Below, piece by piece: positions 4,736 to 61,217 of a stretch of DNA of 64,000 nt (positions are counted from its first letter, which is position 1; each line of letters opens with the position of its first letter). The translations under genes were made by a program, and so were the position numbers. A model generated the notes under the pieces. It was not told where the DNA came from, searched no databases, and saw nothing but the letters and a program-made list of their open reading frames with translations. The stretch spans positions 3,720,001-3,784,000 of the forward strand of contig NC_043019.1 in NCBI RefSeq assembly GCF_006345805.1, read 5' to 3'. This DNA comes from Octopus sinensis. Taxonomy: Eukaryota.

Positions 4736-4954
4736 TTTATAAGTCTCAGTTAATACTGTTGATGCATCTGAACAATAAGAACTATGACTAGCTCGATTAA
4801 AGGCGGTGCCCCAGCATGGCCGCAGTCAAATGACTGAAACAAGTAAAAGAGAGTGTATTTATGTCCTTTCCGATTCTGCTAGTTGTTTATTAACTATCAG
4901 TTCTTCCAGTGGCCTGTTGCTTTAAACCTGATTTACCATTTTCGTCTATTTTAG

Positions 4955-5089
4955 TGCCAGTCTATCCAAAGAAGTGTCTGGGAGGAGTCGTTTACTGGAG
5001 GACTTCCGAAATAACAGAATTCCAAATCTCCTCCTCAAAGATCTTGCCAATCATGTTGTAGAATTTTCACAAGATCAACATGGATCCCG
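4955..5089 (+). CDS. pum: pumilio exon: start of PUM-HD (R1' and R1)
   Basis: tttAG|T acceptor and TCCCG|GTAAGT donor. 135 bp, phase 2 to 2. Encodes [38 protein letters not shown]. Not in the ORF track. Confidence 0.96.
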
Positions 5090-5353
5090 GTAAGTAGTTG
5101 GGTTATTCAGTATTTAAAATTTCAATTTACTGTTCTTCTAGTAATTGAAATAAGTTCTATTTTTTCTGTAGAATGTTCTTTAGGAAAGTTGTAAATCTAC
5201 TGGAGTTCTATTCACTCTTGTCCAAATATAGGATAAAGTGTTAACAGTATTGAAACATTTTACATGTTTATAGAATTGTAAGGGGTTTGTGGTTAAAATT
5301 ACCATTTTTGCTGGTGTATAAGATATACTTTTTCATTTTTTAAAATGTATTAA

Positions 5354-6959: not shown

Positions 6960-7218
6960 ATTTATCCAACAAAAGCTGGAGAGAGCAACTCCACAAGAGA
7001 AAGCCATGGTCTTTAATGAGATCCTTTCTGCTGCTTATAGTTTAATGACAGATGTGTTTGGGAATTACGTTATTCAGAAGTTCTTTGAATTTGGTGTTAT
7101 TGAGCAGAAGCAAACATTGGCTCAACGTGTGCGTGGCCATGTTCTTTCTTTAGCACTGCAGATGTATGGCTGTCGGGTCATTCAAAAGGCTTTGGAGTCT
7201 ATTCCATCTGACATGCAG
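6960..7218 (+). CDS. pum: pumilio exon: PUF repeats R1-R3
   Basis: ttccAG|A acceptor and ATGCAG|GTTAGT donor. 259 bp, phase 2 to 0. Encodes [10 protein letters not shown]...[15 protein letters not shown]...[21 protein letters not shown]. Confidence 0.97.
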
Positions 7219-9147: not shown

Positions 9148-9285
9148 GTTGAAATTGTAAAAGAATTAGATGGACATGTACTAAAGTGTGTCAAAGACCA
9201 GAATGGAAACCATGTTGTACAGAAATGTATCGAGTGTGTTGAACCAAATCATCTTCAGTTCATTATTGATGCTTTTAAAGGACAT
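9148..9285 (+). CDS. pum: pumilio exon: PUF repeat R4
   Basis: tacAG|GTT acceptor and CAT|GTAAGT donor. 138 bp, phase 0 to 0. Encodes [46 protein letters not shown]. Not in the ORF track. Confidence 0.97.
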
Positions 9286-10039
9286 GTAAGTTTTCTTTTC
9301 TGTATCTAAACCCTTTCATTACGATATTTCTGTTGAAATGCCTTGCCTTTGTTTCAATCAGTTCTGAAAATAATGAAGTTTTCAGTGAAATAACTTTACC
9401 ATTAACCCTTTAGCACTTAATCTAGCCCAAATATTCTACATGTTTTATGTTCAAACTGGCCAGATCTGCCCTTTTACTCATACCCTACAATGTCATTCTA
9501 AATATAAACAATCATCCCCTCATCGAAATCTTAGAGCTATAAGACTGACTGTGGGATTGCACCTAGAAAGTTACCCTCCCAGGCATAAGTCTGGGCAAAG
9601 GTTGTTTATGGAAGACCAGCTGTCACCCATGCATACCGGCCTCCCATCTCCACGCCACCAGTGTTATCCAAGGGAAGGCAAAGGGGCCAATACAGCTTGG
9701 CACCAGTGACGTCGCAACCCATTTCTACAGCTGAGTCAACTGGAGCAACGTGAAATAAAGTGTCTTGCTCAAGAACACAACACGCAGCCCGGTCTGGGAT
9801 TCGAACTCACAACCTTAAGATCGTAAGCTCGATGCTCTAACCACTGAGTCACATGCCTTCACAGAGCTATAAGATATAATAAGCATTACATTTGACAGAG
9901 AAATCTAAATGCTAAAGGGTTCTTTGGAGCATCGATCGATATGAAATTCTGATGGTAGTTTTTTTTAGATTACTTTCAAAGGTAAGTTTTTATCAGTGGC
10001 CAAGGGGCAATCTCTGGTAGTTTGGTATCAAACCAATTA

Positions 10040-10918: not shown

Positions 10919-11018
10919 TTAATAGAATCTCCAGTATGTTGTTAGTTATTATTTCAGTATTACATTTCCTCAGAGCCAGGAATTAATTCTATGCCTTGCC
11001 TTACGTCTCTTTTTATAG

Positions 11019-11266
11019 GTGTTCAGTTTGTCTACACACCCGTATGGTTGCAGAGTGATCCAACGCATTCTTGAACACTGTACTGCAGAACAAACAACTC
11101 CCATTCTCGAGGAACTCCATGAACATACTGAAAGACTTGTTCAAGACCAGTATGGTAATTATGTTGTGCAGCATGTTTTGGAACATGGACGAGCTGAAGA
11201 CAAAAGTAAGATAGTCGGAGTAATCAGAGGAAAAGTACTTGATCTCAGCCAGCACAAATTTGCCAG
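11019..11266 (+). CDS. pum: pumilio exon: PUF repeats R5-R7
   Basis: tatAG|GTG acceptor and GCCAG|GTAAAT donor. 248 bp, phase 0 to 2. Encodes [19 protein letters not shown]...[14 protein letters not shown]...SQHKFA. Confidence 0.97.
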
Positions 11267-13282: not shown

Positions 13283-13366
13283 CAATGTGGTGGAGAAATG
13301 TGTGTCTCATTCCTCAAGACAAGAACGAGCATTTCTAATTGAGGAAGTTTGCTCAATGAATGATGG
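13283..13366 (+). CDS. pum: pumilio exon: end of R7 and start of R7-R8 loop
   Basis: ttctAG|C acceptor and GATGG|GTAAGT donor. 84 bp, phase 2 to 2. Encodes [29 protein letters not shown]. Confidence 0.96.
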
Positions 13367-13817
13367 GTAAGTTCGTTTTTTTTAAAAATTATCTTTAAAA
13401 TTTTTATTGGCTCAATTTGAAGGAAACCAACGGTGTTCTGCACAGGTCCTCCCAACATGGTCTGATTGGCATACTTTTAACCCTTCAGTGTTCAGTTTAC
13501 TTTGTCAAATGCAGTTGCTTATTTATTCACATAATTTTCAATTCATTATTGCATTATCTCGTGGCCTCAAGATCTCACTGATGTGACTGTTTAGTTTTAG
13601 AATTACATTGCTAGATATGTGAAAGGCCAGATCTGACCAATTTAACCCTTTTGTTACCAACCCGGCTGAAACCGGCTCTGGCTCTGCAGTACAAGTGTCT
13701 TGTTTTCATAAATTTTGAATTAAAATCTTCCACCAAACCTTAGTCACAAATACTGTTCCTAACACTAGCTTAAACCTTTTGTTACCAACCCGGCTAAAAC
13801 CATCTCTGGCTCTGTAG

Positions 13818-14007
13818 TAGTTAGTTAGTTAATTTTTTGGCTCAAAAGCAAAAAGCAAGGCCATGTAGGGGGACATGGAGTTAAGTACAGGGTGGTGTTC
13901 ATGTAAAGAGTTCAGGCCACTTGAGGTCAAGGAGACTTTGAACAAAGCGGTCGTCGGCATCTTCACCATCTCGTCTGGCAGCTTGTTCCACGGATCCGCA
14001 ACCCGGA
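13818..14007 (-). mobile_element. 5'-truncated CR1-type LINE 3' end nested in a TTAA MITE
   Basis: Reverse complement of ~30830-31021 (…DPWNKLPDEMVKMPTTA…) with a (TAAC)n tail. Confidence 0.8.
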
Positions 14008-14996
14008 ATGTCTTGTTTTCATAAATTTTGAATTAAAATCTTGCACCAAACCTTAGTCACAATTTATGTTCCTAACACTAGCTGAATGATAACAAAGTTA
14101 TTCTACTAAATTCTTTGTTATATCTAAAATAATTGAGAGAAACACTGAAAATCTCAAAATAAATACAGTAATGAAAGGGTTAAACATACTTCCTTTATCC
14201 TGCTATTTGAATTGTCCCATAAATGGGCTGTTAACAATCTAAAAAAATACTGCTTTTTTGGTCAATATTTTAATTGATGGAAATATCAAAAACTTATTGG
14301 CTTCAGTATGTATGGTGAACTTTAAAAATCTAATTTCTAAAATTATTTTTTGTTTTTGTCTATTTGAGAATTACAAAACTATAATAGAAGACGCAAAAAA
14401 AAAATCCACTGTACTTCATCACATTACTTTAAATAGCATTGTCTTTTTACCTGTGCTCACCTGTAATTTGAGTAGTTTTCAAGTCAATTCTGTATTTGTG
14501 AGAGCTTTTCATTGTTCCAAACACAACTTAAATATATTAATAAATTTTAAAAATGTAAGTAGTTTTAGGAAACCAGTCTAAAATTTCAGTTTTAGAAAAC
14601 CATCTTTGTGTATTTTAATTTGAAATCCAATAATGAAAGGGTCTAATACTTGAAATTATATACTCTGGACTTTAATCCTGTAGCATTCAGATTTCTGTCA
14701 AATGTAATGCTTATTGTTGTGAAATACGGCCTCCTGACACCAACACAGCTCCAACAGCCAAGTCAGCGGCTGAGAAACCACAGCCCAGCCCCAGCAAGTC
14801 AACTTGCTCAGAGTGGAAATAGCAGTTGTACCTGGCTGGATGTCTTGCATGATGTGGTTCTTTGTTGCCCGGGTTCACTTTCACCGGTTCCATCACATCT
14901 TTTCTCTGACCATCTTTGTTGCCAACTTCACACTGACTGTAGTCCCTTGTTGCCTAAACGTAACATCAACTGTTCACATTGTCAAACTCGCATCAC

Positions 14997-15058
<62 letters not shown>

Positions 15059-15074
15059 ATATATATATATATTT

Positions 15075-15305
15075 TTCTTTACTACCCACAAGGGGCTAAA
15101 CATAGCGGAGACAAACAAACAAGGACAGACAAAGGGATTAAGTTGATTACATCGACCCAGTGCAAAACTGGTACTTTATTTATTGACCCCGAGAGGATGA
15201 AAGGCAAAGTCGACCTCGGTGGAATTTGAACTCAGAACGTAACGACAGATGAAATACCGCCAAGCATTTCGTCCGGTGTGCTAGCGATTCTACCAGCTCA
15301 CTGCC
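15075..15305 (-). mobile_element. SINE family B monomer
   Basis: Matches the family B consensus. Other monomers at ~5700-5900, 30215-30427, 32722-32950, 36840-37020, 38715-38950, 39453-39665 and 62962-63195. Confidence 0.85.
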
Positions 15306-15529
15306 TTATCACTAGTTTATATAGTACACCTCACAGTAAAAAGCATGCAAAAAGAAAACGTACAGCATGCTTTAAATCAGTCACATGATCTGTGAACGTT
15401 ATTTCTCGTTAGAATTAATTATTAATCCAGTATTGGTTTTCTTCTGTAGAACTAGAGAACTGTAGCAGTATCATTTGAATTTTATATTTCTCACAATATT
15501 TCTCCTTCATAATATTATTTATTCATATT

Positions 15530-15932
15530 GCCGTTGCCAGCGCCGCCCCGACTGGCCTCGTGCCGGTGGCACGTAAAAAGCACCATCCGTCCGTGGCCGT
15601 TTGCCAGCTTCGCCTGGCCCCCGTGCTGGTGGCACGTAAAAAGCACCATCCGTCCGTGGCCGTTTGCCAGCTTCGCCTGGCCCCCGTGCTGGTGGCACGT
15701 AAAAAGCACCATCTGTCCGTGGCCGTTTGCCAGCCCCGTCTGGCACCTGTGTCGGTGGCACGTAAAAAGCACCCACTACACTCACGGAGTGGTTGGCGTT
15801 AGGAAGGGCATCCAGCCGTAGAAACACTGCCAGATCAGACTGGGCCTGGTGCACCCTTCTGGCTTCCCAGACCCCAGTTGAACTGTCCAACCCATGCTAG
15901 CATGGAAAGCGGACGCTAAATGATGATGATTG
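15530..15932 (+). mobile_element. retroposon family C with 63-bp tandem 5' repeats
   Basis: Units start at 15560, 15623, 15686 and 15749, followed by the family C body and (GAT)n tail. Confidence 0.8.
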
Positions 15933-16163
15933 ATGTGAACTATTTGTGCATCACCTTGTGGATTTGAGATTTCAGTGATTGCTTATTTTTAAAATGACAT
16001 TGTTGGGTAGATGTGAGAGGCCAGAAGTGGGCCAGCTTGAAAATAAAACAGCTTGTTTGGGGCCGGGTGTGGTTGGTTTAAATGCTAAAGGGTTAATGAA
16101 CAATCTAGTAACTTATTGGTGTTTGTGTGTTGCTGTAATATAACTAATGTATTTTTCTGTTAG

Positions 16164-16407
16164 TCCCCACAGTGCCTTGTATACAATGATGAAGGACCAG
16201 TTTGCTAACTATGTTGTACAGAAGATGATTGATGTGGCAGAACCTGCTCAACGCAAGAGTCTAATGCACAAGATCCGTCCACACATTGCCACTTTGCGCA
16301 AGTACACTTATGGGAAACACATCTTGGCAAAACTGGAGAAGTTCTTCATGAAAACAAACTCGGACATGCCTCAAATGAACATGACACAGAATGGACCTCT
16401 TCCCTGA
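16164..16407 (+). CDS. pum: pumilio terminal coding exon: R8, R8' and stop
   Basis: gttAG|TCCCCAC acceptor, with an alternative in-frame AG giving exon start 16173. Encodes [23 protein letters not shown]...[23 protein letters not shown] at 16405-16407. Confidence 0.97.
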
Positions 16408-31560: not shown

Positions 31561-32082
31561 TAAATACGCCCTTTTAAAGCCTAGCCAGGCTCATGGACCC
31601 GGTTTCAATGGCGTCTACCAAATCCACTCACAAGGCTTTGGTCGGCCCGAGGCTATAATAGTAGAAGACACTTGCCCAAGGTGCCACGCAGTGGGACTGA
31701 ACCCGGAACCATGTGGTTCGTGAGCAAGTTACTTACCACGCACCTAACATAAAAGAACATGTAGTTAACCGCGTAGAGATTATGGGGCATTCATGCCTTA
31801 CACAGCGGCAGTGCAAACCAGCGAGGGACCCTGTATGTTGTCACTCGACCAATAAGAAATAGCGACCAACGTCTTTCTTCATGTATTTTCCTCCACTAAA
31901 AATTGAAACAAAATATCATATAGCGCAGGAGTGGCTGTGTGGTAAGTAGCTTGCTTACCAACCACATGGTTCTGGGTTCAGTCCCACCGCGTGGCACCTT
32001 GGGCAAGTGTCTTCTACTATAGCCTCGGGCCGACCAAAGCCATGTGAGTAGATTTGGTAGGCGGAAAGTGAAAGAAGCCTGC

Positions 32083-33075: not shown

Positions 33076-35434
33076 CAGTGTTTCCCAACCTTTTTTCCCG
33101 GCGCCCCACGTTTTCATAGCAAAAGTTTTTACGCCCCACCTTTTCCCATGTCCACTCACATTTACAAGTACATGTGGGCCTACTTACAATTGAAAAAAAA
33201 TCAAAAATTAAAAAATTGTATTCAAAATACAAAAAATAGTTTGAGAATTGAAACAACAGGCACTGAAAGTGCATAACACCCAATAAATCGATAAAATTAT
33301 TACGATTTCTCATGTTTTTAAAAAATGTCAATTTATAAAGAATAAAGAAACACGTTTTTTCAGTTCAATTATTTGACGGTCAGCTCGACTAATTTGTGAG
33401 AACCCTGTGCCTGATGCATACAGCACAAGTTTTTAATTTGAGGAGACAACTTTGTTAATTTCAGTCGTAAATCGCCACGTTTTGTAATCTCAAGCCGGTT
33501 TCTCTTGGCTTCGAGCAAATTATCAACTGCACTAAAACCACATTCGACCAAATAAGACGAAGGGAAAGGAATCAGTAGCTCTCTCGCTGATGTAGAAATT
33601 TTAGGATATTTTCTTTCAACCTCGTCATATAGCCACATCTTTGTACCTTTCAATTTAAACAAAGTCTTCACTGATTCATCATGTTGTAATTCTGATAACT
33701 CTTCTTGGTATTGGATTGTAGCATCAGAAACGTTAATCAGAAGCGGTTGAGTTAACCAAGAAGGAAAATTCATTGCCTTTAAATCGCAAAATCTGTCATT
33801 GAAATCCTTTATCAAGATATTTAAATGATCAATAATTACAATGCCAGCATCATTCGTTATTTCACATTTACTCAACCAGTAAAGTTCACTGAAATTTCTT
33901 TTTCCATAATTCGAGAGCTGTAATAAATCCAAAAATCTTTGCTTTTGCATCAATAAGTGTCATGTTTGCACCTTGAAGTTGTTTATTCAAGTTTCCAAGT
34001 TTCTCAAATATGTCTGTCAAATAACTGACAAATGCTTTTCCATCCGTTGTTGACAGCAATTTCATTTCACATTTATCACTAAGAAAGTCGTTAATCTGAT
34101 CAAATAATTCCATGAACCTCTTTAAGCAGTTTCCACTTGATAGCCATCTTACTTCTGTATGAAGCAATAATCGAACATGTTCGGCACTTTGATTTATACA
34201 AAACTGCTTAAAAAGACGTTCAGATTTAGAATTTCTTTTAATGCTGTTGACACACTTGATCACACTTTGAAGAATCTTGTTAAGAACAGGGGACAATTTC
34301 TTGGTAACCAAGTTTTCTCGGTGTATTACACAATGGACAGTCAACATGTTTGGATTTTCATCCTTCATCATTTTTAAGCATCCCGTATTCTTGCCCATCA
34401 TGGCAGGTGCATCGTCTGCCGCACATGCCAGTAAGTTTTCCTTTGGTATTTTGTTTGCATCCAAATAATGTTTGATTTTGATGTAAATATCATTTGCAGT
34501 TGTGGTGGTTTCAAACGATTCGCAGAACAACATCTCTTCCTGAAACTCCTCGTGGTCAATATACCTCACATAAGTCAATAACAGAGCCTCACTGTCCCGG
34601 ATTGTGGATTCGTCCATTTGTAATGAAAACTTACGCAATTTTAATTTCTCAATGAGCTGGCTTTCAACATCTTGCCCCATTTCATCTATTCTGTTCGAGA
34701 CAGTGTTATTACTGAGTGGCATAGTCCTGATATCTCCATCATCTTTTTGTAATACAGTTTTTAAGAATATTGAGATAGCAGGTTTAATCAGTTGCTCTCC
34801 AATAGTGTGATTCTTTCCATGTTTTGCTATAAGCAAGGAGATTTCGTAGCTGGCTTCAAGGGCACGAGTATGAGGCGCTTGTTTTGCATGAAATAGTGAA
34901 GTGAGTTTTGTTCGGTTTTTAAATTTTTCTTTCAATGATTTGAAGTATTCCAAATCTAAATTAGAATTATTAGGATGTCTTACCTTTAAGTGCGCTTCCA
35001 GCCTACCTGCCTTCATTGACTCATTGCTCATCGTCTGATTACATAATAAGCAAAACGGTTTACGCTCATCATGCTCATCAGGAATGAATCCAAACTTCAA
35101 AAACTCCACCGCGTATTGACGAGTCTTCTTCTTGTTTGGTTTGCTCATTTTCAATAGGGCTAACAAAAGACTAATTGAGGCAAACTAATTGAGGCAATTG
35201 ATTGGCTTATCTGAATAGTAAGTTTATTGCTCAGTGCGGGATCTTCTTTGTCTCGCTGGGGTGCGAGAGTTTCCGATGTGGAGGCTTCAAAGGAAAGACG
35301 GAATCTAAGGTTGTGCCCGCGATGACCGCTCGTTATGTACAAATATTTTCACAGCCCACGTCTATGCCCCGCGCCCCACCTGAATTTTCTCAGGCCCCAC
35401 CAGTGGGGCGTACGCCCCACCTTGGGAATCACTG
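33076..35434 (-). mobile_element. hAT superfamily, Buster/Charlie-type DNA transposon, 2359 bp
   Basis: TIRs CAGTGTTTCCCAA / CAGTGATTCCCAA. Perfect 8-bp TSD CTATAAAG (33068-33075 and 35435-35442) with central TA. Subterminal CGCCCCAC repeats. Confidence 0.95.
33369..35148 (-). pseudogene. Buster-type transposase (~590 aa) broken by one frameshift near 33900
   Basis: ATG at 35148. BED-like CxxC...H...H, FSLQMDEST, DDAPAM, HCVIH, HTEVRWLS, and in the second frame PFPSSYLVECGFS and RGDLRLKLT. ORFs 33886-35166 and 33369-33953 overlap. Confidence 0.92.
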
Positions 35435-42064: not shown

Positions 42065-42323
42065 CGTTGTATAAACTAGTGGTGAGTCGAAGTAATTTCT
42101 TTTTTTCTTTTATTTTGTTCTTTTACTTGTTTCAGTCATTTTGACTGCGGCCATGCTGGAGCACCGCCTTTTAGTCGAGCAACTCGACCCCGGGACTCAT
42201 TCTTTTTGTAAGCCCAGTACTTATTCTATCGGTCTCTTTTTGCCGAACCGCTAAGTGACGGGAACGTAAACACACCAGCATCGGTTGTCAAGCAATGCTA
42301 GGAGGACAAACACAGACACATAA

Positions 42324-42370
<47 letters not shown>

Positions 42371-43699
42371 TACGACAGGCTTCTTTCAGTTTCCGTCTAC
42401 CAAATCCACTCACAAGGCATTGGTCGGCCCGAGGCTATAGCAGAAGACACTTGCCCAAAATGCCACACAGTGGGACTGAACCCGGAACCATGTGGCTGGT
42501 TAGCAAGCTACTTACCACACAGCCATTCCTGCGCCTAATCTAAATAAAAATTGCATTCCTTTCTGACTCACCCTCATAAGTGGTAGGCATGGTGAGAGAT
42601 GCGAGTATCAAAAGATGCATCATTGTCCCGGGGTCTAATGAAAACTAAGTGTCGCGTGTTCTTAACCGAGGATTGCTTTACACTCATTGACCGCCTTAAT
42701 CTAACTGGTACACTAATTACCATGGCGAAGTACAAGTGTCCGCTCTGAGAGTTCCATAACAACGGTATTTAACGAGAACTGATACATTAAGTTCAATGAA
42801 TTCGTAGCTGTAAGTACAAATGGAGATACTTGACTCCTAATGATATTTCGGTGTAGATTATAAAGTTCAGTTCACTGAGAGCAGATCCTTCACTAAAGAT
42901 CTTACTTTCGCTTGTGTAATCAAACATTAGTGGAGGCGCGTGGCTTGGTGGTTAGGGTGTCAGCATCATGATCGTAAGATTGTGGTTTCAATTCCTGGAC
43001 CGGGCGACGCGTTGTGTTCTTGAGCAAAACACTTCATTTCACGTTGCTCCAGTCCACTCAGCTGGCAAAAATGAGTAACGCTGCAATGGACTGGCGTCCC
43101 GTCCAGGTGGGGAACACATACGCCATTGAAACTGAGAAACCGGGTCCATGAACCTGACTAGGCTTTAAAAGGGCGCATTTATTATTTAAAACATTTAAAA
43201 AATTAATTAATTTATTTTTAATCACAAATTAAAGGCCTATATCATGTATCTCTACCGATATTTCGGTGCAGATTTTGAAGTGCAGTTCACTCAGCTCTGG
43301 ATTAACCATTAAGCAAAATGAGCACGCGCTTAGGGCATCAAGGGAAGAGAGGAGACTCAGATATGGTAAACGGTTTACGGCGCAACAGAAATCGCTTTAA
43401 ATTTACTAAAATGATGATCCAAGTGGTGCATTTAGATTAACTGGCCTACCGATATTTCGGTATAGGTTTTGAAGTGCAGTCCACTGAGCTCTTGATTGTG
43501 TGACCTCCTTCGGTCATGAATGACCATGGGCTTGCACCTAGAAAGTTACCCTCCGAGGCACAAGTCTTGGCAAGGTTGTTTATGGAAAGCCAGCAGTCGC
43601 CCACGCATACCAGCCTCCCCTCTCCACGCCAACGATGTTATCCAAGGGAAAGGCAAAGGGGCCGATACAGCTTGGCACCAGTGACATCGCAGCTCATTT

Positions 43700-44455: not shown

Positions 44456-46639
44456 TCAGAACAATAGGAGAAAGCTTTTCAAATAAAAATGAGGCGTTTA
44501 GTAACAGACCGTCGTAAGCGGCACAACTTAAAAACCGAGAAAAACGCAGTCAGTTTCGCGACTTTCGGAATGCGATATCTCAGCGAGGAGTGAAGTTAAG
44601 AAGCTGGTTTTGGTCTTAAAATGACCGTGAAGGCCGCTAATCATTTCACTTATGTGCAATTATTTATTTTTAGTGGCTGTGTGGTAAGTAGTTTGCTAAC
44701 CAACCACATAGTTCCGGGTTCAGTCCCACTGCGTGGCATCTTGGGCAAGTGTCTTCTGCTATAGCCCCGGGCCGACCAATGCCTTGTGAGTGGATTTGGT
44801 AGACGGAAACTGAAAGAAGCCTGTCGTATATATGTATATATATATATATAAATATATATGTATGTATATATGTATGTATGTATGTGTGTGTATATGTTTG
44901 TGTGGCTGTGTTTGTCCCCCCAACATCGCTTGTGTGTTTACGTCCCCGTAACTTAGCGGTTCGGCAAAAGAGACCGATAGAATAAGTACTAGGCTTACAA
45001 AGAATAAGTCCTGGGGTCGATTTGCTCGACTAAAGGCGGTGCTCCAGCATGGTCGCAGTCAAATGACTGAAACAAGTAAAAGAGTAAAAGAGTATCTAAA
45101 AGATGAAACAATGACTGCATCTTTCTCATTTTATAGAAGGTATCGGTAGTATGAAACGGTGTATCGCATTGCATATTTCAGCCATAGTATCTAGGGAAAA
45201 CATACAAAGACCCACCGAAGGTATTGCTTGAGTTTTAATATATCAAGGTAAGTATCTTTAAGAGGTAAGTAAGACAAGAGAGTAAAATAATAGCCCATTA
45301 TCGTTACGATGGTAAGGAGAAATATTAGAAAACTAGCACTATGACCCGGCGTTGCTGGGTCATAGTGCTAGTGCATGCGTATACAGTTGCATGCGTGCGC
45401 ACATGCACGCGAGGACTGTCCAAATCTCCGACCAATCACATACAGCTTGCTGGCATTCAATTGGCGTATCAAGTTTCGGGCATTTTGATTGGGTTTTGGA
45501 TAGAAAATTCACAAAAAAGTCACTTCTATTGATTTTTTAATGGCTTTGCGGAGTGACTGGGGAAATGTAAAGATGTGCACGACCACCCTTGGACGGTTTT
45601 GAATGACCATAGAAAGTGCGAGACCTCTAACTGAAAAATTGTGGATTTGTATAAAGGACACGCACACAGACATTTTGCCGTTTATATATATAGAGATAAA
45701 TACATATGCATGCATACATACATACATACATACATACATCATACATACATACATACATACATACATCATACATACATGCATTCATGGTGGCTGCCCTCTC
45801 GTTATCGAGTATGGCCATTGCACGAAGCTTAATCAATGTTGTTATCGTGTAATGCCTGTGCATGAAGATTTTTTTTTTAAAGTGAGGAAAGGCTGTGCAC
45901 TGAGTCAATCCCACTCACTAAGCAACAGCAGCCATAATCCGAAAAGAAGAACAAGTCAACATCATCGGTAACCACTGAGCCGCAGGTTTTATGTCGGAGT
46001 TATCCCAGTTACCTGAGTTACCTTCTCCTAGAAGGATGCCCTAACAAAGGCTAGGGGTCCTTCACTCCCAATGGTTTAACCTCGCGATCGGGTATTCAGC
46101 CCGATTATTTCTATGTCCCCGCGCATGATACAGCCTTAAGACATTTATTGGATGGCCGTTGACTCTCAAGAGTTCCTCCGCCCTTTGACGGGTTTTGTTT
46201 TTCATCTCGCAGGGTGTCCAATAAACACCCTCCTCACCAAACAAGCTTGGTGGGGTTGCCAGTTTAGTCGCCGACGACCCGACCATGCAACAGGTTGTAT
46301 GGGTTACATGTTACCAGTAGCTCTCGAAAGTGACCTGACATACATACATAGATACATACATACATACATACATACATACATGCATAATAACACTATCCTG
46401 ATTACAAGTTCAGGTTTATACCAGTAATTATTTGGGTACTGGAATATGTAATACTGTCCCTAAATACCAATCTTGAGAAATTAGGCTTTGCAAAATCAGA
46501 ATGGAGAAAGCTAACTTGAAGACTACAGATCCAAACTTTGTGGATCTTAAAATGTCTTTTGAAGCCTCCGTTAGATTTGCAGACCTTCTGGCATACACTG
46601 CATTCAAAGGTGTGTACAGTCATATAGGCAGAATATATG

Positions 46640-47902
46640 CCTACATCCATCCATCCATCCATCCATCCATACATACATACATACATACATATAGACAAAC
46701 ATATACATACAAACATACATACATGCATACAGGCATACATACATGCGTACATAAATACATACATACATACATACATACAAACATACATACATGCATACAG
46801 GCATACATACACATACATACATACAACATACATACATACATACATAAATACATACATACATACATACATAAATACATACATACATACATACATACATACA
46901 TGCATACAGGCATACATACATACATACATGCATACATACATACATACATACATGCATACATACATACATACATACATAAATGCATACATACATACATACA
47001 TGCATGCATACATACATACATACATACATACATACATACATACATACATACATACATGCATACATACATACATACATACACACATACATACATGCATACA
47101 TACATACATACATACACACATACACACATACATACATACAAACATACATACATACGTACATACATACATACATACATACATACATAAATACATACAAACA
47201 TACATACATACATACAAAATACATACATACATACACACATACACACATACATACATACATACATACATGCATACATACATACATACATGCATACATACAT
47301 ACATACATACATACATACATGCATACATACATACATACATACACACATACACACATACATACACACATACATACATACATACATACATACATACATACAT
47401 ACATACATACATAAATACATACAACATACATACATACATACATAAATACATACAAACATACATACATACATACAACATACATACATACATACATAAATAC
47501 ATAATACATACATACCTACAAAACATACATACCTACATACATACATACATACATACATACATACAACCATACATACATACATACATACATACATACATAC
47601 AAACATACATACATACATACATACATACAACATATAGACAAACATAACATACATAATAATACATACATACATACATACAAACATACATACATACATACAT
47701 ACATAATACATACAAACATACATACATACATACATACATACATACATACAACATACATACATACATACATACATACATACATAACATACATAATAATACA
47801 TACATACATACATACAAACATACATACATACATACATACATACATACATACATACATACATACAAACATACATACATACATACTACATAATACAAACATA
47901 CA

Positions 47903-47934
<32 letters not shown>

Positions 47935-49090
47935 GACAAACATACATTACACATAAATACATACATACATACATACATACAAACATACATACATACATAC
48001 ATACATACATACATACATACATACATACATACATACAAACATACATACATACTACATACATACATACATACATACAAACATACATACATACATACATACA
48101 TACAAACATAATACATACATACATACATACATACATAAATACATACATACATACCATACATACATACATACATATAATACATACATACAACATACATACA
48201 TACAACATACATACATACATACATACATACAAAATACATACATACATACATACATACATACATACAACATACATACATACATACATACAGCATACATACA
48301 TACATACATACACACATACACACATACATACATACAAACATACATACATACGTACATACATACATACATACACACTACATAAATACATACAAACATACAT
48401 ACATACATACAAAATACATACATACATACACACATACACACATACATACATACATACATACATGCATACATACATACATACATGCATACATACATACATA
48501 CATACATACATACATGCATACATACATACATACATACAACATACACACATACATACACACATACATACATACATACATACATACAACATACATACATACA
48601 TACATACAATAACATACATACATACATACATACATAATACATACAACATACATCATACATACATACATACATACATACATACATAAATACATACATACTA
48701 CATACATCAAACATACATACATACATACATACATACATAACATACATACAAACATACATACATACATACATACATACATACATACAACTACATACATACA
48801 TACATATACATACATACATATATAGACAACATACATACATACATAAATACATACTTACATCATACAAACATACATACATACATACATACATACATACATA
48901 CAAACATACATACATACATACATACATACATACATACAACATACATACATACATACATACCTACATACATACATACATACATATACATATACATACATAC
49001 ATACAAACATACATACATACATACTACATACATACATACATACATACATACAAACATACATACATACATACATACATACATAAACATACA

Positions 49091-49122
<32 letters not shown>

Positions 49123-50525
49123 GACAAACATACATACATACATAAATACTCATACTACATACATACAAACATACATACATACATACATACATACATACAA
49201 TACACTACATACATACATACAACATACATACATACATCATACATACATACATACATACAAACATATACATACATAATACATACAAACATACATACATACA
49301 TACATACATACATACATACATACATACATACAACATACATACATACATACATACATACATACATACAACTACATACATACATAAATACATACATACATAA
49401 AACATCATACATACATACATAAATACATACATACATACAAACATACATACATACATACATACATACATACATACAAACATACATACATACATACATACAT
49501 ACTACATACATACAAACATACATACATACATACATACATACATACAACAACATACATACATACATACATACATGCATACATACATACATACATACATACA
49601 TACATACATACATACATACAAACATACATACATACATACATACATACATGCATACATACATACATACTACATACATACAAACATACATACATACATCATA
49701 CTGCATACATACATACATACATACATACATACAATACATAATCTACAAACATACATACATACATACATACATACATACAAACATACATACATACATACAT
49801 ACATACATACATACATACATACATACAAACATACATACATACATACATACAGACATACATCATACATACTACTACAACATATACCTACATACATACAAAC
49901 ATACATACATACATACATCCAAACATACATACATACATACATACATACATACATCAAACACTACATACATAATACATACATACATACATAACATACATAC
50001 ATACATAAAACATACATACATACATACATACTACATACATACACACATACATACATACATACATACATACATACATACATACATACAATACATACATACA
50101 ACATACATACATACAACTACATACATACATACATACAAACATACATACATACATACATACAAACATACATCATACATACATACATACATACATACAACCA
50201 TACCATACATACCTACATACATACATAAATACATACATACATACATACATACATACATACATACATACATACATACATACTACACCATACAACTATACAT
50301 ACCTACATACATACATACATACACATACATACATACATACATACATACATACATGCATACATACATACATACATACATACATCATACTACATACATACAT
50401 ACATCTGCATGCATACATACATACATACATACATACATACATACATACATACATACGTACATACATACATATAGACAGACACATACATACATACATAAAC
50501 ACATACGTACATACACGTATATGCA
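46640..50525. repeat. ~3.9 kb (ACAT)n microsatellite array
   Basis: Directly visible, with GCAT, AAAC and ACAC variants. Confidence 0.97.
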
Positions 50526-52228
50526 TATGTATGTATGCACACCGACACATTTGCTTCGTTGCTTACATATATGTGTGCATGTGTATGTGTATATTGTATG
50601 TGTATATATAATAATAAACATGAGCATATGAATACATATATAGGTATAAATATATATATGCTTTTTACATGTATATATATACATACACACAAACACACGC
50701 GTACACACATGTATATTCTTTTACTCTTTTACTTGTTTCAGTCTTTTGACTGCGGCCACGTTGGAGCACTGCCTTCTATCAGTATCTTTTGGTGAAACCC
50801 TAAGTTACAGGGACGAAAATACGCCATCACCGATTGTCAATCGGTGATGAGGGGACAAACACAGACATAAAGACACACAGATAGACACAAAGACACACAG
50901 ACAGACACAAAGACACACAGACAGACACAAAGACACACAGACAGACACAAAGACACACACAGACACAGACACATATACGACGGGCTTCTTACAGTCTCCG
51001 TCTATGAAATCCACTCACAACGCTTTGGTCGGCCTGAGGCTATAGTAGCAGATACCTGGTCAAGGTGTCACGCAGTGGGATTGAACCCTGAACCATGTGG
51101 TTAGGAAGCCAGCTTATTATCGCACAGCCACGCCCGAGAAATTGTGGAGTTATTGAGGTTGAGAAAGATGACAATATTAATTTTAAAAAGTTCTATTTCG
51201 TAGAAATTATGAAATTCTTTTCTAAATCTCACCGTTTTGTATTACTGAAGATTCATTGACCATCATCTCTGTAAAGTCCTCCCTTAAACCATTTGGATGG
51301 CAATATTTTTCTGTCTATATAGAAAGAAGTGTATCCCCACGCAGGTAAAAAATAAGGAGAACTTGTTTTGAGGTTTGAAAAAGCACTTGAATTTGAAAAA
51401 AACGTCTAGTTGTTTTTAAAGAGATGTAATCACGTACATACCAAATTAGTTTCGACAAATTTTTGTTTATCAATGGTACAAATATATATATATAAAAGTG
51501 AAGTTGTGTGTCTGTCTCCTACGATTTAGATTCCTAACTACTCCCACATTTTGCGGTGCAGTTTAACCAAAAGCGGGTATCTTATAGTCGTGATTAAAAT
51601 CGAGCCCTTCTGGATATTAGCGCGCGTCTACGATTTAAAAAAAAATTTACCATAATTTTTCTGCATTTTTAATGAAGTTTCGCTCGGTTTATATAAGGGA
51701 AGTAACTCTCTATAAATGCTTATATAGTTATTTCCCTTACAAACCCGAGCAACGCCGGGCGATACTGCTAGTATATATGTAAAACAAGGGGTTTTAGAAG
51801 AGTTTAAAATTCCGAAGTAAAAATCGGACAAACATGTTTTTAAACGATCAAATGCTCACATAAATTTCTATGGGTTTCACAGGGATAGGTTATATCAAAG
51901 TAAATGTTCGACGAAGAGAAAAAGAAAAGATAAAAATAAAGAAGAGAGGAAGAAAAAAGTTTTTTTTTTTATACAGTTTCTGTCGTGGTACGTGTAGTTC
52001 TTTTTTCTCTCGCATACTCGTCTTACTCTTTACTCTTTTACTAGTTTCAGTCATTTGACTGCGGCCATGCTAGAGCACCGCCTTGTAGTCGAGCAAATCG
52101 ACCCCGGGACTTATTCTTTTTGTAAGCCCAGTACTTATACTATCGGTCTCTTTTGCCGAACCGCTAAGTAACGCTGACGTAAACACACCAGCATCGGTTG
52201 TCAAGCAATGCTAGGGGGACAAACACAT

Positions 52229-53036: not shown

Positions 53037-53121
<85 letters not shown>

Positions 53122-53239
53122 TTATAATATACATACGGTTGTCTTCGGCCACGACTTCAGACTGGACAATCTTTGCGAATGGAATTTGGTAGCCGAAGTC
53201 TGTGCACAAGCCACCATCTCCCCACACGCACACACACAC

Positions 53240-54795
53240 ACATACATACATGTGCGTATACATATCAACATACATATATACATACATACATACATACATA
53301 CATACATACATACATACATACATACATGCATACATACATACATACATACATACATACATACATACATGCATACATACATACATACATACATACATACATA
53401 CATACATGCATACATACATACATACATACATACATACATACATGCATACATACATACATACATACATACATACATACATACATGCATACATACATACATA
53501 CATACATACATACATACATACATGCATACATACTACATACATACATACATACATACATACATGCATACATACATACATACATACATACATACATACATGC
53601 ATACATACATACATACATACATACATACATACATACATGCATACATACATACATACATACATGCATACATACATACATACATACATACATACATACATAC
53701 ATGCATACATGCATACATACATACATACATACATACATACATACATTACATACATACATACACCACATACATGCATACATACATACATACATACATAATA
53801 CATACATACATACTGCATACATACATACATACATACATACATACATACATGCATACATACATACATACATACATACATACATACATGCATACTACATACA
53901 TCACATACATACAACTACATACATACATACATACATACAACACCCAATACATACATACATACATGCATACATACATACATACATACATACATACATACAT
54001 ACATACATACATACATCACACACACATACATGCATACATACATACATACATACATACATACATACATACATACATGCATACATACATACATACATACATA
54101 CATACATACATGCATACATACATACATACATACATACATACATACATGCATACATACATACATACATACATACATACATACATACATACATACATACATA
54201 CACACACACACATACATACATACATACATGCATACATACATACATACATACATACATACATACATACATACATACATACATACACACACACATACATGCA
54301 TACATACATACATACATACATACATACAATCATGCATACATACATACATACATACATACATACATACATACATGCATACATACATACATACATACATACA
54401 TACATGCATAACATACATACATACATACATACATACATACATACATACATACATACACACACACATACATACATACATACATACATGCATACATACATAC
54501 ATACATACATACATACATACATGCATACATACATACATACATACATAAATACATACATACATACATGCATACATACATACATACATACATACATACATAC
54601 ATGCATACATACATACATACATACATACATACATGCATACATACATGCATACATACATACATACATACATACATACATACATGCATGCATACATACATAC
54701 ATACATACATACATACATGCATACATGCATACATGCATACATACATACATACATACATACATACATACATACATACATACATACATACATACATA
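53240..54795. repeat. ~1.55 kb (ACAT)n/(GCAT) array
   Basis: Directly visible. Ends at a SINE A head. Confidence 0.97.
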
Positions 54796-54961
54796 GGCGC
54801 AGGAGTGGCTGTGTGGTAAGTAGCTTTCTAACCAACCACATGGTTCTGGGTTCAATCCCACTGCGTGGAATCTTGGGGCAAGTGTCTTCTGCTATAGCCC
54901 CGGGCCGACCAATGCCTTGTGAGTGGATTTGGTAGACGGAAACTGAAAGAAGCCTGTCGTA

Positions 54962-61117: not shown

Positions 61118-61217
61118 NNNNNNNNNNNNNNNNNNNNNNNNNNNNNNNNNNNNNNNNNNNNNNNNNNNNNNNNNNNNNNNNNNNNNNNNNNNNNNNNNNN
61201 NNNNNNNNNNNNNNNNN
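61118..61217. other. assembly gap (100 N)
   Basis: A run of 100 N, a standard placeholder. Contiguity across it is not guaranteed. Confidence 1.

Follow-up and report, generated by a model that had tools for sequence, protein, structure and literature searches.

The window (the whole 64,000-nt stretch of Octopus sinensis DNA analysed here) carries the 3' half of a pumilio gene, the parts of which are collected in Table 1. The introns between its six PUM-HD exons are canonical (GT-AG) throughout, as read from the junction sequences, and the protein obtained by joining these exons contains eight PUF repeats (Pfam PF00806, E = 1.9e-90), which makes it a member of the PUM-HD proteins. The last 96 residues match PDB chains of both PUM1 and PUM2 (E ~1e-73). 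The window PUM-HD is 70-81% identical to those of mollusc and annelid PUM proteins and ~75% identical to that of vertebrate PUM2; on this HD identity the gene is an orthologue of the classical Pumilio (PUM1/2, fly Pum) as opposed to other PUF subfamilies, and its owner falls among the spiralians. Protein searches with the window pumilio returned nothing above 91% identity and no same-species transcript from the collections searched.

Table 1 Features of the pumilio gene in the window.
Feature	Position	Strand	Basis or remark
pumilio, 3' half	first 16.4 kb	+	tblastn placement and junction reading
PUM-HD coding exons (6)	4955-5090, 6960-7218, 9148-9288, 11019-11266, 13283-13366, 16164-16407	+	tblastn to PUM proteins, junctions
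Penultimate coding exon	13283-13366	+	tblastn, junctions, translation; ends AAT GAT GG, last two bases GG open the Gly codon
5' splice site GTAAGT of last intron	13367-13372	+	sequence
Last intron, phase 2	13367-16163	+	junction sequence; splits the Gly codon of N-D-G
Putative branch point CTAAT (branch A 16147)	16144-16148	+	inferred from the YTNAY consensus only
T-rich polypyrimidine tract TATTTTTCTGTT	16150-16161	+	sequence; abuts proximal AG
Proximal acceptor AG (TAG)	16162-16163	+	sequence; exon start 16164, long loop NDGPHSALY
9-nt segment TCCCCACAG	16164-16172	+	Gly third base, Pro, His and first two bases of Ser (AGT)
Distal acceptor AG (CAG)	16171-16172	+	sequence; exon start 16173, short loop NDGALY, in frame
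Last coding exon, long form	16164-16407	+	PUF repeat 8 and C-terminal tail; stop TGA 16405-16407

Apart from the gene, microsatellite-like arrays of great length, built of CA- and TACA-type units, occupy positions 1-1500, 46500-50600 and 53100-54800 of the window, and an assembly gap of 100 N lies at 61118-61217. A dispersed repeat, probably a SINE-like element, is present in many copies on both strands (1504-1683, 31585-31749 and 42259-42540, with further copies on the reverse strand). A 196-residue open frame on the minus strand (33372-33959) has no Pfam match and looks transposase-like by eye only. Within pumilio, a second AG was also seen at two upstream acceptors: that of exon A (4953-4960), which reads ttttAG/TGCCAG/TCT and has an in-frame delta-6 second AG, and that of exon D (11017-11026), which reads atAG/GTGTTCAG/TT and has a frame-shifting delta-8 second AG.

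Anatomy of the tandem acceptor

The 3' end of the last intron (16150-16185) reads TATTTTTCTGTTAG/TCCCCACAG/TGCCTTGTATACA, with TGCCTTG as the start of the last exon after the second AG. The 9-nt segment between the slashes is exonic when the proximal AG is used and intronic when the distal AG is used, and both joins (13366-16164 and 13366-16173) translate in frame to the same stop codon. Since two AGs lie within 2-12 nt of each other at the boundary and the frame is kept either way, the site is, in sequence, a tandem delta-9 acceptor, and the in-frame second site removing exactly Pro-His-Ser that the preliminary description of this DNA had pointed out is confirmed to the nucleotide. On a qualitative comparison of splice-site strength, both AGs (TAG and CAG) stand in a good, pyrimidine-rich context. 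The description had also credited the distal CAG with a pyrimidine run of its own; a run is indeed present, but it consists simply of the codons CCC-CAC-AGT. CTAAT is the only good branch-point match, and from its putative branch A the distance would be 16 nt to the proximal AG and 25 nt to the distal one.

Of the six pumilio acceptors in the window, four are followed by a further AG no more than 14 nt downstream, and the tandem arrangement in the window does not exceed chance expectation. The distal CAG arises automatically, because the ancestral His-Ser codon pair CAC-AGT directly follows the intron. In amphioxus, GGG CCA CAC AGT stands at the equivalent place in mid-exon, and CCN CAC AGT also occurs in transcripts of many taxa, so the second acceptor can be regarded as a by-product of ancestral codons.

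Known tandem acceptors (NAGNAG and the delta-2 to delta-12 classes; TassDB2, GTEx) resemble the window site in that two AGs, here 9 nt apart, preserve the frame, the outcome here being a three-residue indel in a surface loop; where known acceptors are at least 8 nt apart (TassDB2), a short pyrimidine stretch precedes the second site separately, and the same holds in the window. They differ in that the use of both sites is only potential in the window, and in human only 212 (1.1%) of the 18,645 acceptors with a delta-9 AG are confirmed as alternative (TassDB2). In the GTEx catalogue of tandem splice sites, minor sites are usually used at a level at least 10-fold lower, with a preference for the upstream acceptor. 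A comparable case is WT1, in which a 9-nt tandem site adds or drops three residues (+/-KTS) in a nucleic-acid-binding protein, as the window site would. The +KTS and -KTS isoforms of WT1 differ in function. In this gene, which TassDB2 lists as a delta-9 tandem donor tied to human disease, the site is a donor and both isoforms are proven and conserved, whereas the window has an acceptor with the potential only.

The R7-R8 loop and Nanos recruitment

The residues at stake belong to the loop that connects repeats 7 and 8, and the position of the window indel is that of the vertebrate three-residue insertion. The PDB sequences of human PUM1 and PUM2 both have NDGPHSALYT, and the vertebrate loop NDGPHSALY is exactly the long product of the window. 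In the alignment of insect Pumilio to the window protein, a three-residue gap falls exactly at NDG(PHS)ALY, and the fly Pum chain 5kl1 has 89 residues across 92 query residues; the Drosophila loop is of the same length as the short product of the window. These comparisons bear out what had been stated in the preliminary description, namely that human PUM1 has NDGPHSALY (as does PUM2) and that the fly-type loop is three residues shorter. At the 7218/9148 junction (...SDMQ/), the window protein is two residues short of the vertebrate ...SDQQVINEMVRELDGH, another small length difference at an exon boundary.

Weidmann et al. (2016) described the three-residue insertion in the R7-R8 loop of vertebrate PUM, a contact between the loop residue F1367 and Nanos, and the loss of the complex when four residues are inserted into the fly loop. 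Human PUM1 without the insertion interacts with Drosophila Nanos (Sonoda & Wharton 1999, as cited in Weidmann et al. 2016). The view that the loop contacts Nanos and that its length affects recruitment accordingly holds for fly and human proteins with fly Nanos. The long product of the window has Met at the position equivalent to F1367. The gating of fly Nanos recruitment by this indel is known for the fly and human proteins. Edwards (2001) is a further reference on the R7-R8 loops of vertebrate and Drosophila Pumilio.

Distribution of the loop intron and of loop lengths

The vertebrate and amphioxus loop is encoded in mid-exon, whereas that of the window straddles an intron boundary. Vertebrate PUM1/PUM2 genomic open frames run uninterrupted from SNVVEKC through NDGPHSALY to ...MHK, where an intron follows, and the amphioxus genomic sequence reads through to ...MMK with no intron at the loop. 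Splicing is therefore unable to vary the loop in these animals. Splicing of the vertebrate loop had been considered as a candidate and was dropped, as the genomic frames read straight through and ~50 PUM1/PUM2 cluster members that span the loop are all long, with no short loop among them.

An intron of the same position and phase was found in tick, mite, termite- and ant-like insect contigs, bivalve, gastropod and annelids, as well as in many annelid- or mollusc-like contigs. Tandem acceptors were read in the genomic sequences of (i) the tick Rhipicephalus (tcAG/GCCTCACAG/TGCC), (ii) Mytilus (atAG/TCCACACAG/TGCC), (iii) Batillaria (acAG/ACACCACAG/CGCG), (iv) Owenia (ttttcAG/TCCCCACAG/TGCC, with the 9-mer and flanks as in the window) and (v) contig L086 (gcAG/GCCCCACAG/TGCC); AG-N7-AG with the same intron also occurs in L029 and in clitellate contigs. 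Short-form acceptors were read in the mite Panonychus (ctcAG/TGCT, genomic) and in termite-like metagenome contigs and an ant-like contig (acAG/TGCA and atAG/TGCA). A genomic open frame of a lepidopteran cluster (P0166), seen as protein only, has the same intron position and phase; the insect position was read from termite-, ant- and lepidopteran-type sequences. The last intron is old and common to the protostomes sampled. The preliminary description had proposed a survey of the AG-N7-AG arrangement across bilaterian pum genes: it is present in tick, mollusc and annelid, but the intron itself is absent here from vertebrates and amphioxus, so it is not a general bilaterian switch.

Two irregular sequences were noted among the relatives. 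In P0493 (an ENA contig of 2794 nt with a C-terminal tail of the window type) the reading frame is continuous from the intron before SNVVEKC through NDGALYQMMKDQ, so that a short loop is encoded with no intron in it, which could reflect intron loss via a short-form cDNA or a chimeric assembly. In Batillaria attramentaria (L092, ~15416-15535), a 60-nt stretch that includes the acceptor together with 24 nt from the start of the last exon occurs as a second, head-to-tail copy just before the real exon; the duplication may be genuine or an artefact of assembly.

Loop length goes together with the acceptor register. Long-loop genomes mostly have the same AG-N7-AG, and short-loop genomes (L002, L035-43, the termite contigs, the ant-like contig and Panonychus) have a single acceptor at the distal position of the window, with T-GCN as the exon start. 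An exon starting at the T of AGT would be expected to complete the glycine codon as GGT, and GGT was found in 5/5 Gly-type short forms versus 4/19 long forms (Fisher p = 0.003, uncorrected for phylogeny). Closely related sequences can differ in form: the short transcript L006 (GAT GGT GCC) and the tandem genomic contig L086 have 100% identical last-exon proteins and ~13% diverged DNA, and so come from different though closely related sources, while the short transcript L003, which belongs to the tail-motif clade of the window, and the long, genomic L004 (acAG/ACACCACACGGCC) are 96% relatives. In the short-loop L002 (4073-4105), CCTCACAG is retained 21 nt upstream of the single acceptor (8-mer, shuffle p ~0.02); this may be a weak relic of the Pro-His-Ser codons moved into the intron. 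No clear 9-mer relic was seen upstream of most short-form acceptors.

This pattern supports, in outline, the earlier proposal that fixation of the distal acceptor gave rise to the fly-type loop, as the short-form exons stand at the distal register and carry GGT. A 9-base exonic deletion would look alike, and the short loops could accordingly be ordinary deletions lying beside the intron by coincidence. The absence of a clear relic upstream of most short-form acceptors is in keeping with deletions, as is the plasticity of the loop, which is seen in both directions: in L001 (2200-2250) and P0366, the closest relatives, it exceeds that of the window by two residues (SDSYGHHSALYS or SDGYGHHSALYS), P0009 has DGSALY, and copepod-like forms also differ. 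Nevertheless, every intron-bearing short form starts at the exact distal register, and the GGT bias (with its phylogenetic caveat) and the L002 8-mer point the same way; moreover, loss of the first nine exonic bases would leave the same sequence as an acceptor shift followed by decay. We regard coincidental deletion as unlikely. The preferred reading is that the distal position repeatedly became the sole acceptor over evolution, and that its sole use would be the most likely origin of the short fly-type loop in insects, mites and several spiralian lineages.

Choice of acceptor and its possible meaning

For the window we favour a passive mechanism, a delta-9 tandem 3' splice site that keeps the frame, in which an old phase-2 intron within a Gly codon sits directly before the ancestral Pro-His-Ser (AGT) codons. 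The proximal TAG would most likely be the main acceptor, with the long loop NDGPHSALY as the main product, because the T-rich tract abuts it, it follows the likely branch point with no AG in between, and the nine nucleotides encode the ancestral PHS. The exact retention of this coding in the window suggests that the nine nucleotides are translated, and the base rates given above (1.1% of delta-9 sites alternative, minor sites at least 10-fold lower, upstream acceptor preferred) likewise favour the upstream site. The distal CAG would be competent but latent or of minor use, and a certain amount of NDGALY may come from it. On balance, a main proximal site with a latent or minor distal one is probable, the acceptor choice and proportion being inferred.

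Gene models of other species bear on this choice. Those of Mytilus, Batillaria and tick are joined at the proximal AG, and the transcript L079 is long although the related genomic contig L085 has the tandem. Owenia fusiformis, the pumilio gene of which has the same acceptor region, intron position and phase as that of the window, is different: its model (CAH1774802.1, GCA_903813345.2) reads ...CNMNDGALYT... and is joined at the distal AG despite the identical TCCCCACAG. The Owenia annotation, in which RNA-seq assemblies and curated junction hints were fed to Augustus and PASA, thus joins NDG directly to ALYT, whereas for the window the acceptor was deduced from the DNA. As that annotation was RNA-seq-guided, the distal junction probably has read support. 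The PHS codons of Owenia are perfectly preserved though left out of the annotated model, so the long form is probably made as well. Of the evidence at hand, Owenia speaks most strongly for true alternative use.

A sizeable distal share is possible in the window too, given the Owenia model with the same arrangement and the short distance of only 16 nt between the putative branch point and the proximal AG, which could favour the distal AG at 25 nt. The distal site may be major or co-major in some tandem species, possibly including that of the window. Taken to its extreme, this would make the distal CAG constitutive in the window species, with TCCCCACAG as intronic sequence (part of the pyrimidine tract) and only a short loop. 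The Owenia model with the same 9-mer, the short transcript L003 from the same tail-motif clade and what would be a more typical branch-point distance of the distal AG speak for such an arrangement. It is unlikely, however, as the nine nucleotides still encode exact in-frame Pro-His-Ser, which is unexpected of free intronic sequence; in addition, the T-rich tract abuts the proximal AG, the first-AG rule and the tandem-site data favour the upstream site, and the proximal AG is the one chosen in the Mytilus, Batillaria and tick models.

A further reading is that both acceptors are used in a regulated manner (e.g. germline versus soma) and give long and short Pumilio proteins differing in the recruitment of Nanos or other partners. 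It would agree with the importance of loop length for Nanos recruitment by fly and human proteins, with the good, pyrimidine-rich contexts of both TAG and CAG, with the conservation of the tandem from tick to annelid and mollusc, and with the Owenia PHS codons, the preservation of which despite being skipped in the model is easiest explained if both forms are made. Against it, coding and a retained AGY Ser codon fully explain the conservation, and the tandem motif is not conserved beyond its coding: amphioxus keeps CAC AGT without an intron, and the distal AG is lost in L001 (the closest relative sampled, 91% identical in the last exon), which has TCG for Ser, and in L004, which has Thr ACG in place of Ser. 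This loss in L001 and L004, the two nearest relatives for which genomic sequence covers the site, is accompanied by no sign of harm. Furthermore, none of the 20 spiralian clusters has both long and short transcripts from one species, pairwise DNA comparison of all fetched last exons yielded no transcript-genome pair from one species, and in no cluster or contig set examined did both forms come from one species. The delta-9 base rate is ~1%, and the Nanos gating described is that of fly and human proteins. A regulated switch is therefore unlikely on present evidence. Much the same low probability is given to the broader scenario in which AG-N7-AG is an ancient protostome alternative site, still used in spiralians and chelicerates to make two isoforms with differing partner recruitment, while insects, mites and some spiralians would since have become short-only, and deuterostomes long-only through loss of the intron. 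The reading put forward in the preliminary description is, as a whole, partly supported, and its regulated Nanos switch is possible.

Tandem acceptors and the importance of the Pumilio R7-R8 loop are each already known; in the literature searched on Pumilio and on tandem splice sites, no link between the two was found, nor any mention of the protostome intron on the loop indel. The evolutionary pattern counts as a real, if modest, result, and a physiological switch is hypothetical. The three residues concerned have been reported to decide Drosophila Nanos recruitment by Pumilio, and if it is true that one gene makes both loops, a 9-base splicing choice could set the partner of a germline and neuronal translational repressor. 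Independently of any switch, the indel that separates fly- and vertebrate-type Pumilio falls exactly on a shared intron boundary in the protostomes sampled, and a shift of the 3' splice site offers a simple route for evolutionary change of the Nanos-contact surface.
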